Shown: piece after piece, positions 9,080 to 17,972 of the stretch
Layout: every line of letters begins with the position of its first letter
Numbering within the stretch: position 1 is the stretch's first letter
Source: Pelomyxa schiedti
Lineage: Eukaryota > Protista > Evosea
DNA: 64,000 nucleotides
Assembly (NCBI GenBank): GCA_020536535.1
Contig: JAHLWZ010000596.1
Coordinates: 37,369-101,368 of the forward strand
Direction: 5' to 3'
Translations under genes and position numbers: made by a program
Notes under the pieces: generated by a model
What the model was told of the DNA's origin: nothing
Seen by the model: the letters and a program-made list of their open reading frames with translations, nothing else
The model's database searches: none

Positions 9080-10247
9080 ATGCATTTACACCTAAGGGTC
9101 GCCTGCGGCCGCCCCTTCCTTCTCTCCCTCCCTCCCCCTACACAGGCCACAGTGTCATCCACAGATAGTCTCGGCGAGCAGGAGCCCGAGCTGGTGGTGG
9201 ACAGGGAGGAATGCTCGCACCTGTTTTTTTTCCCCACCAACCCGCCGCTGCGGGACCCGCCGAGCCCACACGCCACTTTGGCGTGCATCCCTGGGTCCGA
9301 GGAGGGGATCACGCTGAGGTGCCAGCTCGTGGTGCCTGAATCTTGCAATGGCCACACTGTAATCTACTTCCACGGGAATGGCGAAGTGGCTACAAACTAC
9401 TCCCACGATGTACGGGTTTTTTTTTTTTTTTTTTTCTTTTTCACGATTTTTACTCATGAATGTGAATTGGATGTAGCCTGATCCCAGGTGCATTCGAGAG
9501 TTCTTCTTGAGTTTGGGATTGAGAATAATATTTTATGAATACCGAGCTTATGGCGGTAGTACAGGCAGGGACAAGGTGTTTCATTTCTTCTAACCCCAAG
9601 GCACGATTTCTTAACTTCCCTTGTTGTACAGCTATTTATAACAAAGACCTTGGAGGATGTCTCTACCATCATTTCCTCTTTCAGTCTCATCGAAAATAAG
9701 GTAAGTTTTTGCTTTTTCTGGATGGTATTTATACCTGTAGGTTTTCGTTTTCGGTCGCTCTTTGGGGTCTCTATTTGCAATAAGGATGGCCTCAAAGTAT
9801 CCTGCATTGGCAGGAGTGATTTTGGAGAGTGGTGTTGGGGATGTGGCGAGGTTGCTCCTCTCTTTTCCTCAATTTTCAACCAACAAACCTGCAGTGTTTG
9901 GGGTAAAACATTTGTCAAGAGAGGCATAGACCTGGACAAGCTTGCGGATGAGCAACGGAAATACATTAGGCAACAGGACATTGCCGGGTTCCCAGGTTTA
10001 CTCTGGAGGATACCCTAATAACCTTTCTCTGCTAATTAATACAAAAGGTCCTGTACTGATAATGCACACGAAAAATGACAAGATAGCTCCATTCTCACAA
10101 GCAGAGCTATTCTCTCAGTGGAGGCAAGATAACCCAAAAACAACCCTCGTGGCATTTCCCAGCGGGGGCCACAACGGAATTTATGAAAGTAACAGGCCTC
10201 AGTACAAAGAAGCACTCAGAAAATTTTTTACAGAAAACTCTACCTGA
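9080..10247 (+). CDS. Alpha/beta hydrolase (ABHD13/ABHD17-like); start uncertain
   Basis: VIYFHGNGE, YEYRAYGGSTG, the nucleophile elbow FGRSLG, GVILESG, IMHTKND and GGHN. Confidence 0.85.
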
Positions 10248-10341
10248 AAAAATAATGAAATCTTTCTTTCTCGAAATGTTCCGTACAAGAAACAAACAGA
10301 GACTAGTGTTGGCAAGAGAAACAGGTTTATTGCTTCTCGGC

Positions 10342-12504
10342 TCAGAAATTCTTGCAGAGGGGCATGGACGCAACAGAAGAGTGACGGTCTGACATGTATT
10401 TCGTTTTGATGGATTGGTAGCTGCTGGAATACTTCAGCACACACGCGTGTAATTTTCGAGCTACTGGAACGATGTCCTCCTCTGAGTATTTGGAGTAGTA
10501 CGCCAAGGTCGAGGTCTGTATTTGGGCAAATGTCAGACATTATAAGACCAGGAATTATAAAACAGTCTTGATAAAAGAAAAAAACTAACCCAATTCTGAA
10601 GATGGGTTGTCCGCCTTGTAAGGTACACTGCTGCGGCGGCGATTTGTGATGGGAGATAAGCTAACAGTGAGTAATCCATAGTGCTCATCTCCACAAGGTA
10701 TTTGGAGAATGTATGGCTCACAGGATCAGCCAAACTGGCTTTTGAATACCTCCGCAGGAAGAACAAGGGGCTGAGAACAGACAACTGGAAATGCAACCTA
10801 TCGAGTATAGTGCATTCACACTTGATTCACATTAACTGATTGTCGAGAACAAAATCAATATTCACCTTGAGAATTTGTGCACGGTCATATGCGTGGTCAG
10901 AGATATAGATGAGATCGCCAACTTCAACTGCGTAAATCTCCTCAAATTTGGAAGCAATCAGGATTGAAGTAATGCCAACAAGTTGCAACTCGGTTCTAAT
11001 TGAAATAGGTTTGTAAGGTCAAGGACAGTCAAGGCTGTGTACCTTGACACCATTACTTCTCCCAAATATTTATCAACAATGTAAACAGCCAAGAAGAAAG
11101 TCTCTGAAAGCAATTTAAATTTAATGCAAACCTCAGCCTAAGGAGAGGGTTAAAAAGAAAATCCCAGTTGGAGTGAAAGATACCATCCAGTCCACCAAGA
11201 TTTCTCGCATCTTCTCGTTCAATCTCATATTTTGTTCCTGTCGGTGATACATCTGCAAGTAACAGGCGTTAAGCCTTTCTTGGACCTAATTGGAGTTGGA
11301 AAAACAAAACAGGAGTAAAAGCACAAAGTTCACCTCTTTGTCTCGGCAGTTTTCAAACACTTCCCGCACATAATCGGTGACAAAAATTGGGTCACAATTA
11401 TCGCCCAAGTCAATGTCAACAACCGGATCTACGTAAGTAAGGTGCATCTCTTGCTCTGAGATCTGAACTCCCGTGTGGCTTTGGGCTTGTTGTTGTTGTT
11501 GTGGTTGCGGTTGTTGAGGAACTGGTGCAATTCCCGAAGGGGCAATAATCGGCGCTGCATGATTGACAGTTGCAACAGAAACGGCGTTCTGCGAATGGAC
11601 AGTGTTGTTTCGGTGGGAATTGTCAATCGACATTTGCTCCGATGGGAGAAGGGAGGGGTGAGCTTCGTCCTGTACTACTGATCGGTTGTTTTGTTGTGGT
11701 ATCCCACAATTGTTTGCCGAGACAAAGAGGTGAACTTTGTGCTTTTACTCCTGTTTTGTTTTTCCAACTCCAATTAGGTCCAAGAANNNNNNNNNNNNNN
11801 NNNNNNNNNNNNNNNNNNNNNNNNNNNNNNNNNNNNNNNNNNNNNNNNNNNNNNNNNNNNNNNNNNNNNNNNNNNNNNNNNNNNNNGGGATGAAGGTAAG
11901 TGGAAACCAGCGGTACAAAACAAAAAAAACGTACTGGTTTCTTGGCTGCTGGAGCAGACTCGCTTGTGAACCTGTACTCGGGGCCAGTGTAAACAAGAGG
12001 GCGCTTTGCTGCAATTGGTTGCTGCTGCTGATGCAATGTGTTGGTGACTGGAATCTGCTGCAACACAGTTTGCTGCTGTGCCCGTGGGGGCATCATCTGG
12101 ACTGGTGGGTGTGCGGGAAGCACTATCTGAACGTTGGGGATCACGGAGGGTTGTGAAGAGGTTTGCCGAACAACCATGGGGTTGGACTTGATGTGCATAG
12201 ATTTCTTGACCTCCAAACTGCGTGTGTTCTCATCCTGTTATATAGGGAAAAAAAAAAAAACCAGGGATGTCAAGGGACCAACTTTTTGTGTGGGGGAAAA
12301 AAAAAAAAGTGAAGCGAGCAATGCACCAGTGCTCAATAAACCCAGTCAAACACACAAAAACAAACTCGACCAAAAAAAAAACCCATTAGAGTTGATGCAA
12401 AAAAACCATCCAAAGGGGACAATAAAACGCGCAAGTACCTGCAGCACAGTGGGGCGCATGGTGATGGTCGTGTGGACTCTGGACGGTTGCGCTAAAACGT
12501 ACAT
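10342..12504 (-). CDS. Mitotic B-type cyclin, interrupted by the assembly gap
   Basis: Cyclin box across exons: MREILVDWM|AEVCIKFKLLSETFFLAVYIVDKYL, LQLVGITSILIASKFEEIY, PLFFLRRYSKA and YLPSQIAAAAVYL. Also DPIFVTDYVREVF. Confidence 0.9.
11715..11786. repeat. 72-bp inverted copy of 11277-11348 abutting the gap; likely an amplification or assembly chimera
   Basis: tgccgagacaaag...ggtccaagaa is the exact reverse complement of 11277-11348 and ends at the N run. Confidence 0.85.
11787..11886. other. Assembly gap (100 N)
   Basis: Run of exactly 100 N. Confidence 1.
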
Positions 12505-13447: not shown

Positions 13448-13708
13448 CCAACCCAACTTATCCAGAAACACAACTCTGGTACAGTTTCCCGCATTCACTG
13501 AAGATGAGGTCTAACAACCCTTCATACCGCCAGTTCTGCGAGTTTGACGACAATGAGACTTTAATTCAGACAATCTTGTTCCTCTTCAGTTAAGGTTTCT
13601 GATTACAGATTTCGCGCAACGCCCAACAGGCAAAAAACCAAAATCATCACAAAAAGCAGCGGTTTTTCGCGTACTCCAGCTAACAGATTTTTCAATAACC
13701 CTTAACGC

Positions 13709-15370
13709 ATGACTGACAGCGCATCCACGGCATGGTCCTATCTGTTATCGTCGGTCGACGGATCTACGGAGGCCGCCAGCTCTCAAGCCAAGTTGCTCCT
13801 GCTGATAAACAAACTGGCCTCGTCAAACAGGATAACTGATGAGGAGAAAGCAAAGTTCAAAACGGCCGTGCTCGCCCTCGATGGGAGCAAGTCAGGTGGT
13901 GCTTTTTTTTTTTTTTTTTGTTCAATAGATATTACTATTTCGGAACGGCAGCTATGGTGTTATGATTAATCGTTGTTACAGCAGAATCGTGGGAAGCTGT
14001 AAAGGGCAGCATGCAGGGATTGTTGCAGGAATTGAAAGATATTGTTCTTACTCCGCCGTGGGTAGAACAGAGCTTCCAACAACAAAATCTCTTCCAGTCT
14101 CCACAGCAGTCTTTATTTCTAAATCAACAAGCCTCGTTATTTCCTTCTACACAGCAATCCTCTTTGTTTCCCTCTGCACAGCAGACCTCTTTGTTTCCCT
14201 CTCCACAACAATCCACTTCGTTTCCAACTCAACAGCAGTCATCTTTATTCCCATCTCAACAAACCTCTTTGTTTCCCTCTCCACAACAATCGTCTTTATT
14301 TCCGCCTGCGCAGACTGTTGCATGCACCCCGTCAACTCTCTTCCCGTCAACGCAGCCAAATACGTTTCAACAGCAACCTGTTCAGCAGTCACCAGGGATC
14401 GGTTTCCGAAGTGCGAATCCATTCCCCGTTGCCACCCAACCTCCCCCTGCTACAGGTATCTAGAACTTCTTGTAATTTTATTAAAGCTCGTCCCAGAGGA
14501 TACCCCCTCTCCTTCGTCGGCCACGGAGACTTATAAATGTCCATACTTGAATACTTCGGCTGAATCCTCCATTCCAACATTCAAGGTAGTGCTTGTGGGG
14601 GACGGTGGAGTGGGTCTGTACCCATTATTACGTAGTTTACATGTTAACTCTACAAAGGTAAATCCACATATTTCGAAAGACTAAGTGGTATTTTCTCTAC
14701 AATAGAATGACTCTTTCATCTGTTTTTAGAGGGCACCTTTCGCAAAGTGTATATTCCCACCCTGGGGGTTGAGGTTCGCCCCATTACTTTCAACACGAGC
14801 AACGGTCCCATTCGGTTTAACTGCTGGGTTCTTGCCCCTTTTAGTTGCGATTGTGTTAACCCCAACAGGATTGTGCTGGTCTAGAAAAGTTTGGCGGTCT
14901 GAGGGATGGTTACTTTATTGGTGTGTCCTCTCAAAACCACGTCCTCACTAAAAGGATTATAGGTGGCCATGCAGCAATGCTCTTCTTTGATCTTACCTCT
15001 CGGTTAACACTTCAAACTACGTCTCGATGGCACCACGACATTGTTCGAGTCTGTGAAGCAATACCCGCAGTGGTATATCCCTAACTTTCGAAATTCTCGT
15101 AAGTAAATGATTCTTCAATGTAGATGGTAGCTACAAAAACCGATATTCCCACCTACAGGAAGATTACAGAGGATGACATTATTGAGGATGCCGAGGTTAT
15201 TCCCCACATACTAAGCACCCGTTTTCAAATATTCCTTTTCCAAAAAGAAAAAGAATCTGCCGTATACTGAAATCAGCTCCAAGACACACACAAACCTCGA
15301 AGAGCCCTTCTTAATTCTCGCGAGAGCCCTCACACATAACCCCTCTCTCACTTTCGTTAGCCAGCCTTGA
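13709..15370 (+). CDS. Divergent Ran-like GTPase with a long N-terminal extension (helical region plus SLFP/Q repeats); Q69L-equivalent; no acidic tail
   Basis: Spliced G domain: [111 protein letters not shown]. Upstream exons join in frame through GT-AG introns. Confidence 0.85.
14080..14350 (+). repeat. Coding tandem repeat of about 27-30 nt units encoding (Q)QxSLFPS(x)
   Basis: Repeated tctttgtttccctct/tctttattcccatct units. The peptide has about 10 LF-core repeats. Confidence 0.85.
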
Positions 15371-15565: not shown

Positions 15566-17972
15566 ATGGCAGCCAATCCCCCACCAGCTCACGCCCCACC
15601 GGTGGCACACCCCCCAGCTGCCCCATCAGCAATTGTAACGACTGAGGACGTAAAGAGGATCCCTTTTGGTCCTTCCGAAATTTCTGCAGACGAAATCGAG
15701 GTACATTGTGGGGCACACGATTTGCGTTTTTTTTTCCCCCCCCCTGCCTCGTGAGATTATTTGGAGGCTTTTCTACTAGTTATTTGACTCTGACATTTAT
15801 GTTGTTTGCAGTTTTTGTATGAACTGGGGCATGGTGGTTTTGGAAGTGTATGGGCAGGAACTTGCCGCAGACAAAATGTGGCTATTAAACGATTGCATGG
15901 TGAAAATCGACCTATAAGCAGGGACGACTTTGAGAAAGAAATGAAAATTATGAGGTGTGTATCCAATGCAGCGTTATATTTAATTTTAATCATTTCCATG
16001 CCAACTGTAGCATGCTTGCTCATGCCAATGTTTGCCAGTATCTGGGGTCGAGTAGACGTGGTCACGAGCTTCTTATTGTTATGGAATTACTTCCAAAGGG
16101 AGACTTAGCCTCTTTGATGCACAAGTATGTTGTCATCTTGCTTTTGGAGCAAGTAAAACTAAACAAGCGCAATTCTAACAGGGAGGAATTGTCTCTTCAC
16201 CTACGATTGAAAATGGCATGTGATGCAGCCCATGGATTAGTGTGGCTACACAAAAATAACCCAGTTATTCTTCACCGGTTTAACCATCTCTTCTTCTACA
16301 TCCTTGTTCATTTCAGAGGTCTAATGTTCTCATAGTGATTTAAAGACAAGCAACCTTCTTGTTGACGAGCATTATCGAGTCAAGCTGTGTGGTACGTACT
16401 CACAAAATTAAGCTCTAGATAGAATGTAACTTATCACAAAGACTTTGGCTTGTCTGGCCTGAAACCAGTCGGAAAGCACTTAGAATCAGGAAAAATTGGA
16501 ACGCCTGTTTACTCTGGTGTGTCTTGAACTGTAAGTTAATTCAGATTAATTGCCCTTAGCCCCTGAAATATACTTGCGCCAAGAAGAGTATTCAACCAAG
16601 GTTGGGAGATTTGTACTTTAATCCTTGGTTCATGGATTTAGGCTGATGTGTATTCATTTGGCATATGTCTATGGGAGATTGCCACCAAAGTAGAGCCATT
16701 CCCCCAAATTCAAACAGAGCAAGGTTTTAACATAAAGCACCAGAACACTCCTCTAATCCATTTCTTAACAAAAAGAATTCAAGATCATACTTCAGGCAGG
16801 AACACGACCAGATGTAACCAATATTTCTCCTCCATCCTTAGTAAGACTGATGCAAGATTGCTGGAAACCTGTATGCTACATAGTAGTGTTTGATCACTAA
16901 TTTTTTAAGAACCCTGCCGAACGACCAGACTTTGACGAAATCATCCAAAGGTTGTTAATTTTACATGCTCTATCTATTACTAAATTTAGTATCAGACTTG
17001 AAGCCATTTGCGTTGATTGTGTGGTCTTTGACCGGTGGGCCAATGAATTCTGGCTTACGTATGTAAATACTTGTATACTTTCTGTTTTCTCACTATTCTT
17101 TGTATAGACTTTTCCGAGGAAGGGTGTGTTCACTTTTCTTTTCCACTAAATATAATTGTTTTTAGGATACTGTTCCATGGACAGAGTTTTGGAATAGTTT
17201 TGCCATCTCGGCAGGAGTCCAAACGGGAGCCACCAAGCAAGCTTCATGCCTGCGTTTAATTTTATGTAATTTCCCCGTTTTTGTGTTCTATTTTCAAACC
17301 GACTTGCATCAGGTGGTCCAAACAAAAATCAAGTATCCATTGAAAATTGGGGAAGATTACTCTCGTCATTTGGTCCGGGAGATACAAATCTTCTAAGAAG
17401 AGTAAGAATATGGCCCTTTTCCGAAGCTAATTTTTATCAAATTAGGTTCATGATCTCTGTCAAGAACCATATTTCCATGGGGAAATAACAACCAAGGAAG
17501 CTGTTGATAAACTAGTGGGTTTGGAAAGTGGCTCTTTTCTCGTTCGATTCAGTCAGCAGCCTGGATTCTTTGCTATATCCCTCAAGGAAGCCGACGGCAG
17601 AATAACTCATTACAGGTAATACTACATTTACCTTTTCATTAAACTGATCCTATTTTTTCCACCCAGGGTGGAAATGGTGGGTTCCAGAGCAGTTTTAGAT
17701 GGAAATGCATATGACAGTGTCAGAGCACTTGTATGACTATTTTACGTTGCACTCTGAACTCATCAAAACAATCGATACAGGTCAGGGCATATGCTACAAT
17801 TCTGCATACCCCTTGCAAGGGCTCAATGTTTTCATCCATTTTTGTGGACAATGCCTCTTCTATGTACGCTGCAGACAAACTAAGTGCAGGTCCAAGTGCT
17901 ACACTCCTGTCAAGACCTGCTGAAGAAACACCTGCCAACACAACACCCACACCAACACCTTCCAAACACTGA
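15566..17972 (+). CDS. TKL-group dual-specificity kinase with C-terminal SH2 domain (Shk family)
   Basis: LGHGGFGSV, VAIK, HRDLKTSN (spliced), DFGLS, GTPVYSAPE and DVYSFGICLWE. SH2 region YFHGEI...GSFLVRFS..PGFFAIS. Tail PCKGSMFSSIF. Confidence 0.88.

Follow-up and report, generated by a model that had tools for sequence, protein, structure and literature searches.

The gene described here belongs to Pelomyxa schiedti and lies in a stretch of 64,000 nucleotides (assembly GCA_020536535.1, contig JAHLWZ010000596.1, positions 37,369 to 101,368 of the forward strand), which was analysed at its full length and is called the window below; coordinates given without a locus name count from its first letter. 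Nine exons on the plus strand, separated by eight GT-AG introns, span positions 13709-15370 and encode a protein of 420 amino acids (aa) with a single stop. The protein is composed of three parts: an N-terminal helical domain (~90 aa), a region of SLFP repeats (~130 aa) resembling those of phenylalanine-glycine (FG) nucleoporins, and a C-terminal G domain derived from the small GTPase Ran, which sits within residues ~240-420. This new domain architecture is real, and so is the occurrence of a natural Ran derivative that is predicted to be GTPase-dead. The window protein is probably a fixed docking module, neither a working switch nor a free "always-on" Ran. The best explanation of the whole, to which a probability of about 0.45 is given, is that of a fused protein of old lineage that would carry a GTP-locked, non-cycling Ran-type docking module near the nuclear pore.

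Gene structure and expression

A first-pass annotation of the window, made from the letters and their open reading frames (ORFs), had placed a Ran paralog at 14575-15370. No start was found near 14575, the sequence between the upstream stop context and G1 having no in-frame ATG, and the stretch turned out to be the C-terminal domain of the 420-aa protein with FG-type repeats. The start of the complete gene is placed at the ATG at 13709, with an in-frame TAA upstream at 13703. The RNA contigs begin 153 nt into the coding sequence, so that this start is a predicted one.

Between 13500 and 15600, not a single letter differs from the window in two DNA-type runs, which are possibly the source of the assembly, and in two single-cell RNA sequencing runs; the reads belong to one study, the RNA comes from a single sample, and neither the ends nor the levels of transcripts can be read from the contigs. 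The two RNA contigs, 1144 nt and 1148 nt long, contain no intron and carry all eight junctions. They must therefore originate from spliced RNA and not from contaminating DNA, and the gene is transcribed and spliced. This settles the splice junctions that the first-pass annotation had proposed to check. The RNA contigs extend to 15404 and 15415, so at least 45 nt of 3' untranslated region are present. Of most importance for the fusion is intron 2, a phase 1 intron splitting a Glu codon, whose removal in the RNA (X3 and X4) links the repeat exon in frame with the Ran-like part.

The exons and introns are the following:

Exon 1, 13709..13895, plus strand: start ATG and first part of the N-terminal helical domain; RNA covers 13862-13895, joined to exon 2
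Intron 1, 13896..13981, plus strand: 86 nt, GT..AG; absent from an X3 RNA contig; C582 has an intron at the equivalent place
Exon 2, 13982..14455, plus strand: remaining N-domain, then the Gln/Ser/Pro-rich SLFP repeats
Intron 2, 14456..14496, plus strand: 41 nt, GT..AG, phase 1; RNA joint 14452>14494 (cut +3) in X3 and X4, the shorter flank measuring 119 nt
Exon 3, 14497..14613, plus strand: linker, strand beta-1 and start of the P-loop (GDGGVG)
Intron 3, 14614..14657, plus strand: 44 nt, Ran position 22, phase 1; RNA joint
Exon 4, 14658..14687, plus strand: 30 nt; end of the P-loop (KST) and helix alpha-1; RNA contig X4, piece 14657-14686; a 30-nt exon is also found in C582
Intron 4, 14688..14729, plus strand: 42 nt, Ran position 32, phase 1; RNA joint
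Exon 5, 14730..14827, plus strand: 98 nt; switch I (Tyr39, Thr42, PTLGVEV), beta-2, and beta-3 to Trp64; RNA
Intron 5, 14828..14868, plus strand: 41 nt, Ran position 64, phase 0; RNA
Exon 6, 14869..14920, plus strand: switch II; CTA at 14881-14883 is Leu307; RNA
Intron 6, 14921..14962, plus strand: 42 nt, in frame and stop-free, about Ran position 82, phase 1; RNA
Exon 7, 14963..15072, plus strand: beta-4 and alpha-3; RNA; Pfam Ras match with E 1.4e-4 on the exon 6-7 read-through
Intron 7, 15073..15123, plus strand: 51 nt, Ran position 118, phase 0; RNA
Exon 8, 15124..15195, plus strand: G4 TKTD (15133-15144); the loop equivalent to the Ran basic patch is acidic
Intron 8, 15196..15247, plus strand: 52 nt, Ran position 140, phase 0; RNA
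Exon 9, 15248..15370, plus strand: G5 (SSK), alpha-5 and the end at Ran position 180; TGA at 15368-15370

C582 is a second fused gene of the same genome, described below. For intron 4, a homology-guided guess had put the donor at 14685; it was replaced by 14688 from the RNA contigs. With this donor, the length of the domain in helix alpha-1 agrees exactly with Ran.

Two neighbouring genes were observed in the window. A cyclin-like gene (cyclin-box-like ORF pieces) lies on the minus strand at 10200-12220 and is broken by an N run, an assembly gap, at ~11790-11900. On the plus strand, the next downstream gene (15566-16400) has a Pro/Ala-rich N-terminus followed by a protein-kinase domain with a glycine-loop motif and VAIK.

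The Ran-derived domain

In the spliced reading, G1 of the domain is GDGGVGKST, switch I contains Tyr39, Thr42 and PTLGVEV, and G5 is SSK. The codon CTA at 14881-14883 encodes Leu at the site of Ran Gln69, the motif being DCAGLE versus DTAGQE in Ran. The same codon is found in the DNA contigs and in the spliced RNA contigs; CAA was not seen in either. G4 is TKTD, versus NKVD in Ran, with Lys and Asp kept and Asn changed to Thr. The TGA at 15368-15370 comes directly after the residue aligned to Ran Pro180, and the protein has neither the C-terminal helix nor the acidic tail. The Q69L substitution, the altered G4, the intact G1 and effector motifs and the loss of the C-terminal switch and tail had all been read correctly in the first-pass annotation.

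Family scans and database searches were run exon by exon; the trees, the local alignments and the conservation audit used the joined translation. Exon 5 matched 44 distinct sequences in the PDB, all of them Ran/Gsp1, with a best E of 9.5e-10; the best PDB matches were shortened Ran chains of 170-182 aa. The highest identity of the domain to canonical Rans is 55% (an Archamoeba Ran). The Pfam scans returned only weak Ras matches for the individual exons; exon 2 gave no family at E up to 1, and the N-domain had no match.

The conservation audit compared the domain with 89 distinct canonical Rans, in which 116 columns are at least 95% invariant. The window domain keeps 73 of these 116 columns and changes 43 (37%). 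The best-kept regions are switch II (13/16 invariant columns), alpha-3 (7/8) and beta-2/beta-3 (6/7). In Ran, switch I, switch II and alpha-3 form the partner-binding face. The residues kept include the P-loop Gly and Lys (with Ser for Thr24), Thr42, Asp65, Gly68, Lys123, Asp125, Ser150 and Lys152, as well as the alpha-3 motif WH.D.VRVC. Gln69 and Asn122 are lost, and around G5 and alpha-5 the changes Y147T, N154H, Y155T, K159E and K167A are found. By hand count, nucleotide-contact columns are kept in 13 of 16 cases versus 60 of 99 for the other invariant columns, a difference that is not convincing.

A notable change affects the basic patch (Ran 132-142), which is reversed to acidic by K132T, K134D, F138E, H139D and R140E together with a two-residue insertion, only the KK at 141-142 being kept. 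Changes are also found in the K37/K38 region and at R106. The basic patch of Ran was reportedly found by Nilsson and colleagues in 2001 to be important for importin-beta and CRM1 binding. In the window protein, its acidic replacement coincides with the loss of the acidic tail, which docks on that patch. With the patch reversed and 43 of the 116 invariant columns altered, it would not be safe to assume that the domain mimics RanGTP faithfully in its dealings with karyopherins, and broad karyopherin binding is unproven.

Since the residues of G1, G2, G3 and G5 and the Lys and Asp of G4 are kept, binding of guanine nucleotide (and of Mg) by the TKTD-bearing domain is plausible; Rho-family GTPases use TKxD at G4. 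Hydrolysis of GTP would not be expected, because Gln69 is replaced by Leu, and a permanent GTP-type conformation would be expected, because the autoinhibitory C-terminal switch is absent. The C-terminal tail of Ran is needed for RanBP1-type binding, and the domain is expected to be blind to RanBP1 because this tail is missing. Judged by its residues, the domain should be nucleotide-bound, non-hydrolysing, GTP-shaped and RanBP1-insensitive, and it is probably also blind to RCC1 and RanGAP. Measured values for the equivalent laboratory changes in Ran have been published: RanQ69L is unable to hydrolyse GTP, and the GTP/GDP preference is ~103 for Ran 1-179 versus 0.11 for the wild type, a roughly 1000-fold shift to GTP (PMC8607414). 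The tail of Ran normally packs on the G domain (PMC4905271).

The repeat region

Residues 93-232 contain 14 Phe spaced by 8-9 residues, about ten of them in units of the form (S/T)(S/L)LFP(S/P). The composition of this region is strongly biased: Gln, Ser, Pro and Thr together make up 93 of 140 residues, and only 4 of 140 are charged. At the DNA level, Tandem Repeats Finder (TRF) reported an array at 14125-14303 with a period of 27 nt, 6.6 copies and 73% matches. With matches between copies at 73%, the array is therefore not a recent expansion.

The same unit occurs in a nucleoporin of the organism. A Nup98 homologue was found on C825 (L019:1753-4667), with the autoproteolytic domain PF04096 at E 8e-32. 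Upstream of this domain stand a PSLFG block, a GLEBS-like motif (..SFEELRWDY..) and a block in which SLFG, SLFP, SLFN, SLFA and SLFS are mixed; the repeat ORFs and the autoproteolytic domain are taken as one putative gene. SLFP is thus a repeat form used by a real FG nucleoporin of P. schiedti. Two further PF04096 loci were observed in the genome, on C646 and C179. Nsp1_C (PF05064) had no match in the P. schiedti genome.

Ran genes of P. schiedti and the paralog C582

The published P. schiedti assembly has a size of 52.4 Mb and is divided into 5337 scaffolds; its genes have 7.4 introns each, and 1.6% of the introns are of the GC-AG type (PMC8887013). Canonical Ran, for which the first-pass annotation had advised a search elsewhere in the genome, is present at five or six tailed loci, some of which are possibly haplotypes. 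These genes show DTAGQE, NKVD, the C-terminal helix and tails of the EDEDL, DDDDL or EEDI type, and they group with the Mastigamoeba Ran (support 94/93). Ran-binding domains were also found in the genome. With canonical tailed Rans and Ran-binding domains present, the Ran system is a normal one, to which the window gene comes as an extra.

In addition to the canonical genes, the genome has at least six divergent Ran-like genes, the window copy (C596) included; the others are C582, C381, C662, C99 and C1114. They were collected in two stages: the genome was searched with a profile, and spliced alignments were then made with a protein-to-genome aligner that had been validated on the window, so the paralog gene models are predictions from homology-guided splicing. 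The catalytic Gln is lost in 4 of the 6, window copy counted, with Ser, Val and Thr in other copies.

C582 (~68520-70050; L024:1522-3047) is a genuine paralog with the three-part architecture of the window gene. Its N-domain is followed by FSFG/SFSFG repeats and then by a Ran-like domain, in which GESGVGKT and DIPGT are read and switch II has a three-residue deletion. The N-domains of C582 and the window protein are 27% identical over 73 aa (BLASTP, E 2e-5), and the Ran-like domains are 36% identical (E 1.5e-29). The junction between the repeats and the Ran-like part falls in an identical split Glu codon in both genes. The last intron of C582 is a proposed GC-AG intron and is uncertain; if it is real, a long acidic tail follows.

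Intron positions, given in human Ran numbering, separate the fused genes from the canonical ones. The Ran domain of the window gene has introns at 22, 32, 64, 82, 118 and 140, and C582 has them at 22, 32, 64, 79, 118 and 141, plus 170, all six window positions being common to both. C381 has the introns at 22, ~30 and 142 in common with the window gene. The canonical Ran genes, C662, C99 and C1114 have introns at 25, 41, 71, 112 and 170, and none of the six window positions coincides with these. The fused Ran-like lineage, which consists of the window gene and C582 with an intron pattern of its own, is best regarded as old and maintained, not as decaying, because open frames and gene structure are kept in both copies despite deep divergence. 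C381 probably belongs to it as well. The first-pass view of an intact multi-intron gene, as opposed to random decay, thus stands, given the open frame over nine exons, the spliced RNA and the same architecture in C582.

The remaining divergent copies differ from each other. C662 (L008, minus strand, ~1831-866) is a free-standing divergent Ran with the P-loop GDINTGKT, DTVGSE and NKAD, in which the helix and a weakly acidic tail are kept. Its gene is built like those of canonical Ran and its sequence falls within the Pelomyxa Ran clade, so it is a young duplicate that has lost catalytic residues. In C381 (L021:2333-3170), DMPGVA takes the place of switch II, and the helix is retained together with an LPDEDDD tail. 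In C99 (L022) and C1114 (L023), the Gln is kept and the sequence is strongly diverged.

In the approximately unbiased (AU) test, a position of the window domain within the clade of canonical Pelomyxa Rans was rejected (p 0.012), although the group was named after the tree had been seen and the window branch is long. Monophyly of the window gene and C582 was not rejected (p 0.11); the unconstrained tree pairs C582 with C381. The window branch was the longest in the first two Ran trees, at 1.19 and 1.09 changes per column. In the Ran phylogeny suggested in the first-pass annotation, the position of the domain is otherwise unstable among trees. It falls weakly with P0007 and P0029, proteins discussed in the next section, in one tree (63/80), takes no resolved place in the next, and then groups with P0140 (95/88). 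The 63/80 grouping appears in one tree only, and in two larger trees the domain is not inside the P0007-family clade.

Relatives in other organisms

An exhaustive HMMER search of 1.84 billion representative proteins was made with positions 14869-15072 of the window, which comprise exons 6 and 7 and the in-frame 42-nt intron between them. The nearest proteins outside Pelomyxa were ordinary Rans. Joined Phe-rich repeats and Ran-like domains were nevertheless found in P0029, P0036, P0140 and P0141/P0137/P0049. P0029 (L011) consists of an N-domain, FxF/FG repeats, a tail-less Ran-like domain and a canonical tailed Ran. In P0036, the order is Ran, SLFG repeats and a Ran-like domain. A tandem Ran-Ran arrangement, in which a tail-less Ran-like domain precedes a canonical tailed Ran, was observed in P0158 and P0160 of the oomycete Saprolegnia.

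The annotated P0140 is the last exon of a longer gene (L010:2459-3726, GCA_049309645.1). The exons upstream of it code for FG repeats (LVFGF, NAFG, FNFG, IFSF, TFSFG) whose spacers are charged, and these exons are immediately preceded by a B-box zinc-finger ORF. The Ran-like domain of P0140 ends at the same position as that of the window protein and has T24S, R140E and K167A in common with it; Gln69 and NKVD are kept. A search from P0140 for closer homologues returned canonical Rans only.

Another group is formed by P0007, P0151, P0159, P0163 and P0168. All share a conserved helical domain at the N-terminus and carry, besides the Ran-like domain, an acidic stretch and a PSAF..FSF tail. Their Ran-like domains are without the Ran C-terminal switch and keep the basic patch FHRKKNL. 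The site of Gln69 is occupied by Gln in P0007 and P0151, by Leu in P0159 and P0163 and by Glu in P0168. The genes of this family (L009, L012-L015, L025) are intronless and lie on gene-dense eukaryotic contigs from several metagenomes. Between the N-domain of the window protein and the P0007/P0029-type N-domain, BLASTP and phmmer found no match. A profile comparison with the P0007-type N-domain ranked 4th of 2001 in a shuffle test, and hhalign gave P 0.01 with a probability of 4%, which is suggestive only.

Two conclusions hold from these comparisons: natural Leu at the Ran catalytic site arose more than once, and FG-type repeats recur beside Ran-like domains. They bear on the first-pass claim that both the substitution and the truncation are activating. 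The published values for RanQ69L and Ran 1-179 (PMC8607414) agree with this claim, but the changes are not unique events, as the Gln losses among the divergent Pelomyxa copies and the Leu in the protist family demonstrate.

Proposed function and alternative explanations

The G domain would bind guanine nucleotide, fail to hydrolyse GTP and stay GTP-shaped. Less certain is the further step, in which the module would not be a general substitute for RanGTP and would have a fixed, non-cycling docking role instead: together with the Phe repeats, it would keep one or a few transport receptors, or a different partner of the Ran-effector kind, at the nuclear pore or close to it. RanQ69L poisons transport experimentally. 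A specialised docking module is favoured over a faithful RanGTP mimic because the basic patch is acidic, the surface is changed and a karyopherin trap that cannot be released would be expected to be harmful.

Several points weigh against this explanation. The Thr in place of Asn at G4 could lower nucleotide affinity. Karyopherin binding may be lost altogether, given the charge reversal of the basic patch and the 43 changed invariant columns. The repeats encoded by exon 2 gave no match to the Pfam family Nucleoporin_FG (PF13634), and no pore-anchoring domain is recognisable in the window protein, whose N-domain is without a Pfam match. Outside Pelomyxa, neither a close ortholog nor a second DCAGLE was found among the 1.84 billion representatives.

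Some of these points are shared with the strongest alternative, which is itself rather improbable, namely that the protein is a Ran-derived pseudo-GTPase acting outside nuclear transport. The Q/S/P/F-rich region would then serve only as a linker that is disordered or forms condensates, and a partner of another kind would have the G domain as its scaffold. The long branch of the domain, its 37% of changed canonical-invariant columns and the missing Pfam match for FG repeats or an anchor are consistent with such a role, as is the stronger decay of switch II in the sister genes (DIPGT with the deletion in C582, DMPGVA in C381). Against it, conservation in the domain is highest in switch I, switch II and alpha-3, and the repeated pairing of FG-type repeats and Ran-like domains across several lineages would be difficult to account for if there were no link to transport.

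An unlikely alternative, a step further down, is a general RanGTP mimic tethered to the pore. Such a protein would bind receptors of the importin-beta family broadly, as RanQ69L-deltaC does in the laboratory, with the SLFP region as its anchor in the FG phase, and would release import cargo or dock exportins independently of the soluble RanGTP gradient. Leu at the Gln69 site and the end at Ran position 180 match the laboratory constructs, switch II is nearly unchanged (13/16 columns), the repeats are of the P. schiedti Nup98 type, and FG repeats and Ran-like domains are joined in other protists (P0029, P0036, P0140, P0141). However, the basic patch is acidic and the positions of the K37/K38 region, R106, K159 and K167 are changed, and a broad trap from which karyopherins are not released would be expected to poison transport, as RanQ69L does in experiments. 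The first-pass proposal of a constitutive RanGTP mimic therefore stands only in part: the domain is tail-less, predicted to be GTPase-dead and not decaying, but it is fused to other domains, its basic patch is acidic and 43 of the 116 invariant columns are changed.

That the gene is a transcribed pseudogene in decay is very improbable. In its favour are the loss of catalytic residue, tail and basic patch, the long branch, and the search of 1.84 billion representatives, which gave no ortholog; yet the frame of 420 codons is intact over nine exons, the eight canonical introns are correctly spliced in the RNA, nucleotide-binding residues are kept, and C582 keeps the architecture despite deep divergence. 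A free-standing Ran paralog of ~175 aa, acting as soluble constitutive RanGTP, is already contradicted and has next to no probability left, for although the Ran-like domain, taken by itself, seems to lack nothing between beta-1 and alpha-5, G1 has no in-frame ATG before it, the RNA joins the domain in frame to the repeat exon, and C582 has the same fusion with the same split codon.

A wider extension of the docking-module explanation is doubtful. According to it, Pelomyxa and, independently, several other protists would build nucleoporin-like proteins with a permanently GTP-shaped Ran module of their own. The FG repeats would place this module in or at the pore, where it would dock or unload receptors without the soluble RanGTP gradient, RanGAP or RCC1. 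The Ran signal would thereby be hard-wired and tied to one location, and the repeated loss of Gln would be the signature of such proteins.

Comparison with known systems

The window protein resembles Ran/Gsp1 in the Ran-type G domain, the TLGVEV effector motif and the switch II signature. It misses four defining features of Ran, which are the catalytic Gln, the C-terminal switch with the tail, the basic patch and the state of a free protein of ~215 aa. Its domain carries the same substitution as the laboratory protein RanQ69L and has nearly the same end point as Ran 1-179/180 (deltaC). These laboratory forms are without the repeat fusion and without the extra surface changes of the natural protein, notably in the basic patch.

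Among nucleoporins, the GLFG/SLFG proteins (Nup98/Nup100/Nup116) are similar in their uncharged Q/S/T/P-rich spacers and in the LF core repeated every 8-9 residues. Unlike in these proteins, the units of the window protein are mostly without Gly after Phe, and there is no recognisable autoproteolytic or anchoring domain. RanBP2/Nup358 and Nup50/Nup2 combine FG repeats and Ran-binding domains on one polypeptide. Those proteins bind Ran, whereas the window protein carries the Ran fold itself.

The idea of a GTPase that does not cycle is known from Rnd1-3 and RhoH, which are GTPase-deficient and nucleotide-bound members of the Rho family, are membrane-targeted and are regulated by expression or location. 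As predicted, the window domain has this concept in common with them and with pseudo-GTPases; Rnd1-3 and RhoH differ in family (Rho versus Ran) and are without FG repeats. The P0007 family and P0029, P0036 and P0140 have the Phe-rich motifs, the N-terminal extension and the switch-less Ran-like domain in common with the window protein. For the P0007 family, homology of the N-domain is not significant and, in contrast to the window protein, the basic patch FHRKKNL is kept. The searchable literature gave no description of any of these protist proteins.

Fusions of Ran-like domains with FG repeats and natural Q69L paralogs of Ran were not found in the searchable literature, which is incomplete. 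Ran-like genes of giant viruses are mentioned in one preprint; they are not fusions of the window kind. The Ran-derived family of P. schiedti is unusually large, with at least six divergent members besides the canonical genes, and the searchable literature contains no description of it.

A natural, expressed protein that combines Q69L with the loss of the tail and is fused to Phe repeats of the pore type suggests that a Ran fold that no longer cycles was taken up by evolution as a building block. If no receptor is bound, the protein would be a clean example of a small GTPase turned into a pseudo-GTPase scaffold. Should a transport receptor still be bound by the module, a Ran signal fixed to a place, as opposed to one set by a gradient, would be seen here for the first time. 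This, if true, would be relevant to the organisation of transport in giant multinucleate amoebae and in the protists with similar fusions.

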